NCBI RefSeq assembly: GCF_000315625.1
Contig: NW_005434639.1
Location: forward strand, 257,511-321,510
Direction: 5' to 3'
Origin: Guillardia theta CCMP2712
Taxonomy: Eukaryota; Protista; Cryptophyta
Length of the DNA: 64,000 nt
Positions within the stretch are counted from its first letter, which is position 1, and each line of letters starts with the position of its first letter. A program made the position numbers and the translations under genes. A model generated the notes under the pieces. That model searched no databases and was not told where the DNA came from. It worked only from the letters and a program-made list of their open reading frames with translations. Below are positions 6,818 to 10,418 of this stretch, in pieces.

Positions 6818-8613
6818 ATGAATCATCGCAACGTATGGCTGAGCCGAGTTTTCCGAGCGGCTGTAACGCTGCTACCTGTGTCTCTGGTTTGCCTTGACTT
6901 TCTTGCGTCACTTGTATGTCTGAACCGCTCTGCAGCAAGGAACTTGCGCCTTCCACGCGTCTTCCATTGCTTGCATTCAGAGCTTGAAGAACTACAAGCA
7001 CTCGAACCCTTTGCGTGACATTCCAACGCATCCCAGTAAGCACTGCACTGCGACTTCCTGACTGCAATTACTCTTGATTGATTCTTCTTCTCATCAAGAC
7101 AAGCTTTCTTTGAGGACTGGTAGACTGCGAATGAATCTAGGGAACGAAGCAGTAAGAGACCTGAATCGTGCTGCCTGCTGTAATGACGTTGGATGGACGC
7201 AGATTTCGCGGGAGGAGAATATATCAGCAAATAGAGAAGTGCTTGAAACGATCTACAAAGAAGCTGCGAAGGATTTCGCTTCCAGGGACAGCAACGTATG
7301 ATATGGTGAAGGGAGGGATGATGGGTTTTAACGGACCGGGCAGGTGGAGGTGTCTCTAGAGGTTCCTATGAACTGGTGGACTTCCGTTGTTGTGCCGCGG
7401 CTGAAGGAGATAGTCAAGACTGCAGAGATTAAGAAGGAAGACGTCATCTTCGAGGTGGGAAGTGGTCCAGGGACTCTGCTCAAGTACATCTGTGAGGAGG
7501 AATCGACAAACGTGGACAATGTGTACGCTGTCGATCTGTGCGAGGAGATGGTAGACATAGTTGAGGAGAGATTCCCTGACGTCAATACTCTCCTTGCCGA
7601 CTTTCTGGAGCTCTCGAAAGGATCATTACCCAACATGCAGAAGGGCGTTGACGTCATCTTCTTCAACTCTGTGATCAGCACCTTCACAGATCTGCAGGAT
7701 CCTCTCAAGGTATCGGCGTCCCTCTTGAATCCAGGAGGAAGAGTTGTCGTCAGCCATCCTCTTGGGTCGCCTTTTGTCAGCGAGATGAAGAAGTCTATGG
7801 AAGAGCTGTACCTGAACGATCTCCCAGCTGTCGACCAGCTCCAACTTCTTGTGAAACACCTCCCGCTCAAGGTCGACAAGTTTGTGTCAGAGGATGAGCT
7901 GTACATCGCAAGACTGGTTCAGCGACCTTACCATGCCCTGGAGAAAGTCATGTGCATGCGTGGGGACGTCGCATCGGGTTGGGGGAGAGGGGGGAAGAAG
8001 CTTGGGATCCCAACAGCCAACCTTCCTGAATCAATGTTTGCGGATGCTCTGCGGGAGGTCCAGACAGGAGTCTACCTCGGATGGGCTCAGATCGGTGGGG
8101 TGAGCAAGAAGTCGGTGAAAGCCGTGGTCAACGTGGGGTACAGCCCAACTTTCGTCGGAGCTGAGAACCGGGAGAAGGTATGGTAGAGCGTCGGGGGTCG
8201 ATAGTTGACCAATGTTGTGTGCCAGGTGGTAGAGGCTCATCTGCTGGAAAAGTTCGAGAACGACTTCTACGGGAAGGAGATGCGTTTGATGCTGACAGGA
8301 TTCCTGCGGCCAGAGACGAAGTTCGACTCGTTCCCTGAGCTACTGGAAGCCATTCACAAGGTGATTCTCTTCTGCCTCCTGGTGCTCTCCGATCATGACG
8401 ACTGCCTCGCGGGTTTTCAGGACATCGAAAACTCTAGGGAAGCGTTGGATACAGAAGAGTTCTCTGTCCTCTCAGCTCATCCCTTCCTGCAAGTAAGCTT
8501 TTCCTTGTCGTGTCTCGGACAGACCTAACCCAGTTTGCAAGGAAACTTCTGATTATGAAGCCTGGCAACAAATTGCGTATGACGATGCTGTGAAGGCTGC
8601 CGGAAGATGTTGA
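6818..8613 (+). CDS. SAM-dependent methyltransferase - riboflavin kinase fusion with putative plastid presequence
   Basis: MTase motifs IFEVGSGPG, AVDLCEEM, DVIFFNSV, LLNPGGRVVV. RFK motifs GWGRGGKKLGIPTANL, GVYLGWA, VNVGYSPTF, EAHLL, DFYG, FLRPETKF. The spliced N-terminus gives ..VTLLPVSLQGTCA-F. Confidence 0.85.
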
Positions 8614-9182: not shown

Positions 9183-10418
9183 ATGCTGCGCAGCGCGCTC
9201 CTTCTCGCCGGCGCATGCACTGCCTCCGCCTTCGCTCCTGCCGCCCTCCCAGCTCACCGTGCTCAGTCCCGTAAGTCTTATCTGGCACATCCTCCAGTGC
9301 ATCTTGTGCGTTAAAACGATGTGCGAACGTTCAGTCTCGATGCTTCTCGTAGAAAGTTGGTTGCATGCTGTCGGTCACTACGTGGGAAGTTGGATCCCTG
9401 TATCACTGACTCGATCTCTTCGTATGGGTTTGATCCATTCCCCTTGCTCGAGGGCGGATGCTTTCCCGCACTGTGTGAACTTCTGATCCGTGCACCTGAT
9501 GATCCTGAATGTGCTGTAAAACAGCTTGTCAACAGTATTTTGTGACAAGATGTATGATGCGAAGAGGAGCTAACTTGGCCTATCGTAGGATCCGGTGTCA
9601 CCATGCAGCTCTGGGGTGAGGGCAAGGTTCAGGGCAGGGGAGTCCAGGCTATCCCTTTCTCCGCTCCTCCTTCCACCCTCCCCGCGGACATGGTTGGCTA
9701 TGTCGGCTTCGATCCCCTCGGCTTCTCCACTCTCGTCGACATCAGACTCCTCCGTGAGTCCGAGCTCAAGCACGGTCGCGCTGCTATGCTTGCCGCCGCT
9801 GGAGCCATCGCTCAGGATCTCTTCACCTTCCCTGTGAGTGGGCAGGCAAACCCTCGCTGTCGCCTTCTAAAGTTTGGACGCAGGGAGTCGAGAAGGTCGT
9901 CGGAAAGGCCAAGATGACTGGCGCTCACGATGCCCTCATCGCCGGAGCTCATGCCGGCAACAAGCAGTCCTTCGCCATGCATCAGATCATCTTCTGGGTT
10001 GGCCTCATCGAGATCATCACCCTCCCCGCTATCTTCGAGATGCTCAACGGCTCTCCCCGCAAGCCCGGTGACTTCAGCTTCGATCCCCTCGGCCTCAACA
10101 AGAAGGTGACACTTCCCTCCTCCCTCTTCCCCTCGCTCACTCCTTCTCTCCTACTCGTGATCGTCGATGCTCATCTCTTGCTCTTGCAGTCTGATGGCCG
10201 CATGGAGCTGGCTGAGATCAAGAACGGCCGCCTCGCCATGATCGGCATCGGAGGTAGATGACTTTATGCTTCCGCTGTTGCACCTTTCACTCATCCTCCT
10301 TTTCGCAGGCATGATCCACCACTACCTCCTCACCGGCAAGGGACCCATCCAGTTCCTCACCGGCATCCCCAACTACAAGTCATGCATTGAGCCCCACCTC
10401 GGTGCTCTCTGCAAGTAA
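9183..10418 (+). CDS. Light-harvesting chlorophyll a/c-binding protein (Lhcr/CAC-like), plastid-targeted
   Basis: [19 protein letters not shown] leader; [44 protein letters not shown] motifs; four introns; TAA at 10416-10418. Confidence 0.95.

Follow-up and report, generated by a model that had tools for sequence, protein, structure and literature searches.

A methyltransferase-riboflavin kinase fusion, probably plastid-targeted, encoded by a seven-exon nuclear gene of the cryptophyte Guillardia theta

Structure of the gene

The stretch of DNA analysed here (the window) comprises 64,000 nucleotides (nt) of contig NW_005434639.1, contig 35 in the numbering used here, of Guillardia theta CCMP2712 (positions 257,511 to 321,510), and the locus with which we are concerned lies on its forward strand at window positions 6818 to 8613. 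This locus, we have little doubt, is a single nuclear gene of seven exons that carries a class I S-adenosylmethionine (SAM) methyltransferase domain and a riboflavin kinase (RFK) domain in one protein, whose predicted length under the seven-exon model is 492 codons. The exon model draws on the window sequence, the NCBI model GUITHDRAFT_71408 (P0012, 154 amino acids), homologous proteins and two contigs of closely related strains, one from a Logan assembly (L003) and one from an ENA metagenome (L004), so that three strains could be compared. The comparison with the family profile was made exon by exon.

The centre of the gene is exon 4 (7344 to 8177), which encodes the methyltransferase core, a linker of 12 residues and the N-terminal half of the RFK domain (GWGRGGKKLGIPTANL ... 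VNVGYSPTF). A single open frame contains the domain junction: from the final methyltransferase strand (..ELYIARLVQR) only about 12 residues, with no stop among them, lead to the strand with which the kinase begins (..CMRGDVASGWGRGG). An initial annotation of this locus had placed the methyltransferase and a complete RFK in one exon, 7344 to 8178. Both domains do share one open reading frame (ORF), but the RFK domain ends in later exons, and the last position of exon 4 is 8177, since 8178 already belongs to the GT donor. The same annotation held that the fusion is not an artefact of gene modelling, and here we fully agree: besides the single ORF, there is the purifying selection described below, and transcripts of Hanusia phi (90% identity) and Geminigera cryophila carry both domains. 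The public annotation, in which P0012 models the kinase alone, would fit a merger of two neighbouring genes into one; such a merger is, however, already contradicted by the uninterrupted junction and by the transcripts of the other species, and we regard it as a vanishingly small prospect.

Over its kinase part P0012 is 100% identical to the translation of 7344-8177 (word-index search), and it is truncated at both ends: the leader and the methyltransferase domain are missing from it, as is exon 7. It occupies window positions 7957-8528, begins at an internal methionine of exon 4 and ends in a read-through of intron 6 (..HPFLQVSFSLSCLGQT).

Downstream of exon 4, intron 4 (8178 to 8225; 48 nt, GTATGG...CAG) is variable at 9 of its 48 nt, and its splice is confirmed both by P0012 and by the Hanusia transcript P0002. 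Exon 5 (8226 to 8360), which can be aligned with human RFK, encodes the C-terminal half of the kinase (VVEAHLL..., with the catalytic Glu, and LRPE). It is followed by intron 5 (8361 to 8420; 60 nt, GTGATT...CAG), which shows a 3-nt insertion/deletion (indel) relative to L004 and across which P0012 links ...AIHK to DIENS. Exon 6 (8421 to 8492) encodes the C-terminal helices of the kinase (DIENSREAL...HPFLQ) and matches human RFK up to residue 146. Intron 6 (8493 to 8541; 49 nt, GTAAGC...AAG), through which the NCBI model reads, leads to the predicted exon 7 (8542 to 8613) with the C-terminal tail (..EAWQQIAYDDA..) and the TGA stop. This tail resembles those of P0003 and P0004 (..EDWEEVPYDAA..), and in P0004 it is modelled as an ordered strand and helix. 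In the Hanusia transcript P0002 the sequence past ..AIHK matches no homologue and looks like a retained equivalent of intron 5 (8361-8420).

Upstream of exon 4, intron 3 (7296 to 7343; 48 nt, GTATGA...CAG) differs between the strains by a 2-nt indel and 4 substitutions. Exon 3 (7099 to 7295) ends in ...KEAAKDFASRDSN and would encode what remains of the transit peptide together with the helix that the methyltransferase clade has at its N-terminus; ATG 7131 is an alternative start. Its open frame extends from 7074 to 7301, its ...GWTQ...DFAS section can be aligned with cryptophyte homologues, and a double change in L004 (GTAAGA to GTGCGA) is synonymous. Intron 2 (7036 to 7098; 63 nt, GTAAGC...pyrimidine tract...AG) agrees in phase with an exon 3 start at 7099; directly downstream of exon 2 it holds eight variable sites and a 1-nt indel, all within 7054-7096. 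The alternative acceptors 7140, 7152 and 7202 were set aside for 7098 in view of the invariance of 7097-7142 and the pyrimidine tract before 7098, and further because the cryptophyte homology reaches upstream of 7203. The segment 7097-7142 is conspicuous in its own right, with 46 nt free of differences in the three strains, while 13% of the sites vary in the adjoining intron segment. It forms, in the seven-exon model, the first part of exon 3, with basic transit-peptide residues and the in-frame ATG 7131.

Scored against the family profile, exon 4 reached 255.8 bits, exon 5 67.7 bits and exon 6 an E value of 7e-5; exons 3 and 7 alone gave no significant score with this profile. Under the model, 31 of 205 intron sites (15.1%) are variable as compared to 59 of 1324 exon sites (4.5%; Fisher p = 1e-7), and the indels between strains all fall within introns or the last few codons. 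The changes in exon 4 are mostly synonymous (15 synonymous to 4 non-synonymous relative to L003, and 17 to 8 relative to L004), and by this measure exon 4, and with it the methyltransferase domain, is under purifying selection. From exon 2 onward the structure of the gene is established by the present data.

The riboflavin kinase domain

By every criterion that can be tested on its sequence, the protein of this locus is a riboflavin kinase (EC 2.7.1.26). The Pfam family Flavokinase (PF01687) is found in ORF 7344-8186 at residues 202-272 with 50.2 bits (cut-off 19.6). Exon 4 covers positions 4-68 of the 124 positions of this profile and exon 5 positions 73-115 (42 bits), and in a scan of the whole genome the locus scores 94.4 bits. 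The best solved relatives are the human (E = 6e-32) and S. pombe (1.5e-24) RFKs, and since these stand ahead of the kinase modules of bacterial RibF (1e-13 to 1e-16), the kinase half is of the eukaryotic type. The glycine-rich loop GWGRGGKKLGIPTANL, PTAN, the Glu of the E-x-H motif (VEAHLL) and (F)LRPE align with human RFK, and the kinase motifs are invariant in 36 fusion proteins. To judge from these residues the kinase is very probably active.

In its C-terminal part of about 150 residues the protein resembles human RFK (PDB 1NB0), with which it aligns end to end, and S. pombe Fmn1 (1N05). Different from these monofunctional kinases, however, it is extended at the N-terminus by a methyltransferase domain (some 200 residues) and a predicted leader for targeting (some 90 residues). 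A second catalytic domain N-terminal to the RFK domain is also present in plant AtFMN/FHy, which joins a HAD-type flavin mononucleotide (FMN) hydrolase to RFK, and in bacterial RibF, which joins an FMN adenylyltransferase to RFK (PMC2972280). In the Guillardia protein, by contrast, a class I SAM methyltransferase takes the place of the HAD phosphatase or adenylyltransferase. The Pfam matches of the exons include neither a HAD family nor FAD_syn, and the NCBIfam models of RibF match the kinase part only, at 24-36 bits against cut-offs of 184-461. Chlamydomonas RFK2 (Cre01.g025250) is a chloroplast-localised, thylakoid-associated riboflavin kinase (bioRxiv 10.1101/2022.05.31.493820). It may be a relative of the fusion; we mention it as a lead only.

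The Guillardia genome contains a second, canonical RFK gene of the eukaryotic type on contig 48 (111736-111873, minus strand, plus flanking exons; at least three exons), which is recognisable by the motifs ..GEVVKGFGRGSKVLGIPT.., ..GIYFGWATV.. and ..EPHLLHSFPDDFYG.. and probably encodes the cytosolic enzyme. With a separate canonical RFK elsewhere in the genome, the fusion copy would be free for an organellar role.

The methyltransferase domain and its clade

Several Pfam methyltransferase families match ORF 7344-8186 at residues about 28-155, all above their cut-offs, namely Methyltransf_12, 31, 11 and 25 with 35-45 bits, and Methyltransf_23. The AlphaFold model of the domain (197 residues; predicted local distance difference test (pLDDT) 93.1, predicted template modelling score (pTM) 0.90) has the standard class I fold. 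Foldseek returned more than 500 matches at probability 1.0, to class I small-molecule methyltransferases, and methyltransferase clusters of the ESM Atlas match the model with template modelling scores of 0.78-0.84. Within exon 4 lie SAM motif I (FEVGSGPG), which is kept, and the acidic residues D64, which is invariant, and D86, which is conserved to at least 90%; residues of this type contact SAM in class I methyltransferases. All residues invariant in the family are kept as well (G41, D64, N108, H138-P139 of SHPLG and the LP pair L160-P161, in exon 4 numbering), and on the strength of these motifs we consider it quite likely that the domain binds SAM.

By profile and motif content the methyltransferase half belongs to an orphan clade with the signature motifs NACFGN, SHPLG and VPHxLP, the clade profile matching the Guillardia domain with 180.8 bits (E = 9.7e-52). 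Methyltransferases of the UbiE/MenG, BioC and DVU_1556 types share the class I fold and the Methyltransf_11/12/25/31 signature and are the best NCBIfam matches. They differ, however, in that the scores are far below the cut-offs (BioC 47.5 against 184.95, MenG_MenH_UbiE 31 against 158.35 and UbiE 29.9 against 216) and in that they are without the clade motifs SHPLG and VPHxLP. The stand-alone relatives of the domain likewise stay below the UbiE/MenG and BioC cut-offs of NCBIfam. Sequence searches of solved structures, NCBIfam, the ESM Atlas (features and fold) and Foldseek against the PDB yielded generic class I matches only, and a word search with the methyltransferase domain alone found, besides its own cluster, only P0075.

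Stand-alone members of the clade, 205-250 amino acids long and with the same motifs, occur in the red alga Galdieria phlegrea, in Candidatus Obscuribacterales and in Parendozoicomonas, and further ones are encoded in genomes of Acidobacteriota and Deltaproteobacteria from metagenomes. In Candidatus Obscuribacterales (L005/L006:6001-7548) a gene for an EamA-family transporter follows 19 nt after the stand-alone methyltransferase on the same strand, a pairing not seen in the other bacteria examined; some EamA proteins transport riboflavin. Guillardia itself has a paralogue on contig 72 (223590-224147 region; L011:985-2073), a single exon with no kinase domain that matches the clade with an hhalign probability of 99.8 (E = 1e-28) and reads THANG in place of SHPLG. 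Its leader ends in ..CQC↓FSF (here and below the arrow marks a predicted cleavage site), and it looks like a second plastid-type member of the clade in this genome.

Packing and distribution of the fusion

The full-length cryptophyte homologue P0004 was modelled as a two-domain chain with a pLDDT of 90.9 and a pTM of 0.90. The latter value argues for a fixed mutual orientation of the domains, and the methyltransferase and RFK are predicted from this model to pack rigidly.

With a profile built from 23 fusions, no fewer than 306 clusters of proteins (90% identity) were found at E <= 1e-30, and nearly all of the 120 listed clusters carry both Pfam signatures. Nine diatom species from eight genera share the fusion; the diatom carriers named include Seminavis robusta, Fistulifera solaris (two copies), Mayamaea, Chaetoceros debilis, C. 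neogracile, Cylindrotheca, Amphora coffeiformis and Entomoneis, and those outside the diatoms are Pelagophyceae sp. CCMP2097, Hanusia phi and Geminigera cryophila. The database entries of diatoms, pelagophytes, Hanusia and Geminigera that are called 'riboflavin kinase' agree with the Guillardia protein in domain order, clade motifs and C-terminal kinase, at 32-90% identity to the Guillardia exon. They differ from the Guillardia database entry, whose reference model is without the methyltransferase half. When the search was made with the methyltransferase domain only (HMMER), 187 representatives were found at E <= 1e-30, and the kinase domain was present in 71 of the 150 best matches, always C-terminal to the methyltransferase. 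Closest to the fusion in the ESM Atlas are clusters of chlorophyte proteins that are called 'riboflavin kinase' and have 431 and 532 amino acids; in the 532-residue cluster 42% of the members have Methyltransf_11/12, and the 431-residue cluster has the kinase domain only. To judge from these clusters, green algae probably have the fusion too. In the Thalassiosirales the kinases P0095 (Cyclotella cryptica) and P0117 (Thalassiosira pseudonana) have a long acidic N-terminal extension in place of the methyltransferase, which suggests that the latter has been lost or replaced in this diatom order.

Full-text literature searches found no paper on a methyltransferase-RFK fusion. The fusion is a widespread, uncharacterised variant of riboflavin kinase. 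It is neither rare nor unseen, and its architecture is no discovery, hundreds of database entries already carrying it as 'riboflavin kinase'.

The leader and the 5' end of the gene

The ATG at 6818 is the first past an in-frame stop, and its frame opens with a hydrophobic stretch. The residues QGTCA↓FHASS are encoded from 6936 in a different frame, right behind a conserved CAG acceptor. Here begins exon 2 (6936 to 7035). It would complete the signal peptide with QGTCA and, behind the predicted cleavage site, open the transit peptide with F, and a conserved GTAAGC donor closes it. No other part of the locus varies so little: 2 sites in 100 nt differ in the three strains, both of them synonymously in the QGTCA↓F frame. 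An upstream exon is needed, since exon 2 lacks an ATG and its own frame meets a stop upstream of it.

An intron in phase with ATG 6818 could start at any of six GT donors (6833, 6848, 6863, 6878, 6887 and 6914). The best of them, 6914 (GTATGT), would however define an intron of 22 nt, less than half the length of any other intron in the gene (48-63 nt). Donor 6887 (GTTTGC) leads to an intron of 49 nt and donor 6878 (GTGTCT) to one of 58 nt; both keep TCA↓F and give a shorter hydrophobic core than 6914, and indeed all in-phase donors with a usable hydrophobic core yield the same TCA↓F junction. Between 6887 and 6913, 6 of 27 sites are variable as compared to 36 of 834 in exon 4 (p = 0.0013), while 6818-6886 is exon-like (5 of 69 sites, p = 0.23 against exon 4). 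Because of the variability of 6887-6913, and because 22 nt is far below the size of the other introns, we prefer the 49-nt intron. The hydrophobic N-terminus ending in TCA-F that the initial annotation had proposed is kept as a prediction, but the 22-nt intron it implied (6914-6935) is unlikely on these sequence grounds. The preferred exon 1 (6818 to 6886; alternative ends 6877 or 6913) would contribute the ATG and the n- and h-regions of the signal peptide in 23 codons, and the preferred intron 1 (6887 to 6935; 49 nt, GTTTGC...CAG) has a weak donor, a predicted boundary and an intron-like 8 variable sites in 49 nt. No usable intron lengths of Guillardia nuclear genes were found in the literature.

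Two other arrangements were tried and rejected. Donor 6833, which would give a 103-nt intron and no signal peptide, loses its GT in L004, where the change reads V to I, as it would in a coding stretch. A read-through in frame 2 to a donor at 7015 would make both substitutions within 6936-7035 non-synonymous, and the variability jumps at 7036 rather than at that donor.

With the 49-nt intron the predicted signal peptide has 28 residues: a basic n-region leads into the core AAVTLLPVSL, and QGTCA forms the c-region. Cleavage is predicted behind A (-1), with T at -3, and would expose F (QGTCA↓F, 6936-6953); the join of these elements rests on the predicted splice. The leaders of relatives are of the same kind. 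Diatom fusions start with a signal peptide ending in xxA↓F (ASAFAP type), for instance ..SCMA↓FS in Seminavis, ..TAA↓F in Fistulifera, ..ASA↓FSP in Chaetoceros and ..ALA↓FSP in Entomoneis. By a crude test of hydrophobicity plus motif, 71 of 159 full-length fusions are positive, and many more leaders are evident by eye. Plastid import signals seem to precede the majority of the fusions. The cryptophyte proteins P0136 and P0006 have leaders (..PVPTAG↓F and ..PVQTAC↓F) much like the Guillardia QGTCA↓F. A plastid location is well supported by these leaders for the fusion family, and the Guillardia protein, too, is probably targeted to the plastid.

Function of the fusion protein

On balance we favour the view that the seven-exon gene encodes a two-domain FMN-making enzyme that probably resides in the plastid. 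The signal peptide would be cleaved at TCA↓F and the transit peptide would then mediate entry into the complex plastid, most likely into its stroma. There the RFK domain would convert riboflavin and ATP to FMN and so supply the plastid, while the methyltransferase domain would bind SAM and methylate some small molecule. That the Guillardia protein resides in the plastid, that its two domains are active and that they are coupled in any way are inferences from the sequence. The plastid location proposed in the initial annotation is well supported for the family, by leaders made of a signal peptide followed by F, and plausible for Guillardia, where the 5' splice is a predicted one.

A number of points weigh against this view. 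Exons 1 and 2 can be joined only over an intron of 22 nt, whose donor is good, or over one of 49-58 nt, whose donor is weak, and the in-frame ATG 7131 could be the start of a leaderless protein. The cryptophyte proteins of Geminigera, P0009 and P0010 have no clear signal peptide, though they may be incomplete at the 5' end, and some ochrophyte fusions have presequence-like N-termini. Moreover, the clade motif NACFGN is degenerate in Guillardia and Hanusia (NSVIST), and the methyltransferase half stays far below the cut-off of every NCBIfam model. Finally, the neighbourhoods of stand-alone members in Obscuribacterales, Parendozoicomonas, one metagenome contig and metagenome genomes of Acidobacteriota, Deltaproteobacteria and Hebobacterum contain no riboflavin genes and have no neighbour in common.

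Could the same two-domain enzyme then be made without a leader? It would start at ATG 7131, which is in frame with exon 3, the upstream ORF and exon 2 would be 5' untranslated region or an upstream ORF, and the protein would be cytosolic or otherwise targeted. The weak donors and the difficulty of the 22-nt intron would vanish, the invariance of 7097-7142 might reflect a start context, and the three cryptophyte proteins just named would conform. However, this would not readily explain that exon 2 is the least variable part of the locus, with changes that are synonymous in the QGTCA↓F frame and with conserved CAG and GTAAGC borders, nor that diatoms and two cryptophyte relatives have a signal peptide followed by F. 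Moreover, a canonical RFK is already present for the cytosol. We therefore hold a leaderless enzyme to be possible but rather doubtful, and retain the leader.

The NSVIST sequence bears on a different question, as does the divergence of the N-terminal HxxHQxxVFD motif. Both would fit a methyltransferase that is catalytically dead and serves as a SAM sensor or as a structural partner of the kinase, in analogy to the degenerate kinase-like module of plant plastid flavin adenine dinucleotide synthetases, and the tight packing of the model would be compatible with such a regulatory role. Then again, motif I, D64, D86, N108 and H138-P139 are all kept, the domain is under purifying selection, and the stand-alone members in a red alga and in bacteria argue for an autonomous enzyme. 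A dead methyltransferase thus seems to us quite improbable.

If, as we prefer, the methyltransferase is an enzyme, it might act in sequence with the kinase and methylate riboflavin, FMN, a flavin precursor or an analogue to give a modified plastid flavin. The stability of the fusion over several algal lineages and the rigid two-domain model are what a coupled pathway would predict. Yet the stand-alone bacterial members have no riboflavin genes beside them, and family, structure and fold searches revealed no kinship to flavin methyltransferases; nor do we know of any methylated flavin from these algae. Sequential action is accordingly unlikely in our judgement, and a flavin is an unlikely methyl acceptor altogether. 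The flavin methylation or SAM sensing put forward in the initial annotation is still pure conjecture, and neighbourhoods, structure and family searches indicate no substrate. That both domains act on one molecule, be it in the making of a methylated plastid flavin or analogue or in the FMN-dependent methylation of a metabolite, we likewise consider improbable from the sequence data. The same low expectation applies to the combined proposal that such a pathway extends over cryptophytes, diatoms, pelagophytes and probably green algae and that the fusion is older than the spread of red-derived plastids.

To our knowledge, the enzyme that makes FMN in plastids is poorly settled outside a few model organisms, and diatoms, pelagophytes and cryptophytes perform much of marine photosynthesis. 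The fusion is a strong candidate for the plastid FMN enzyme in these three groups. Being stably fused to a flavin enzyme is, moreover, the only functional clue for the orphan methyltransferase clade, which thereby becomes directly testable.

In practical terms, the reference annotation can be improved, as the Guillardia model has been cut down to the kinase and the name 'riboflavin kinase' is misapplied to proteins that consist of the methyltransferase only. Instances of the latter are the bacterial or metagenomic proteins P0291, P0294 and P0302 (clusters of P0215 and P0235), which are so named by one source; the label has apparently been carried over from the algal fusions. As for the neighbourhood of the Guillardia gene, an ORF downstream of it on the same strand (window 9183-9314) begins with a classic ASA↓FAP-type signal peptide, so that the neighbouring gene is likely to encode a plastid-targeted protein too.

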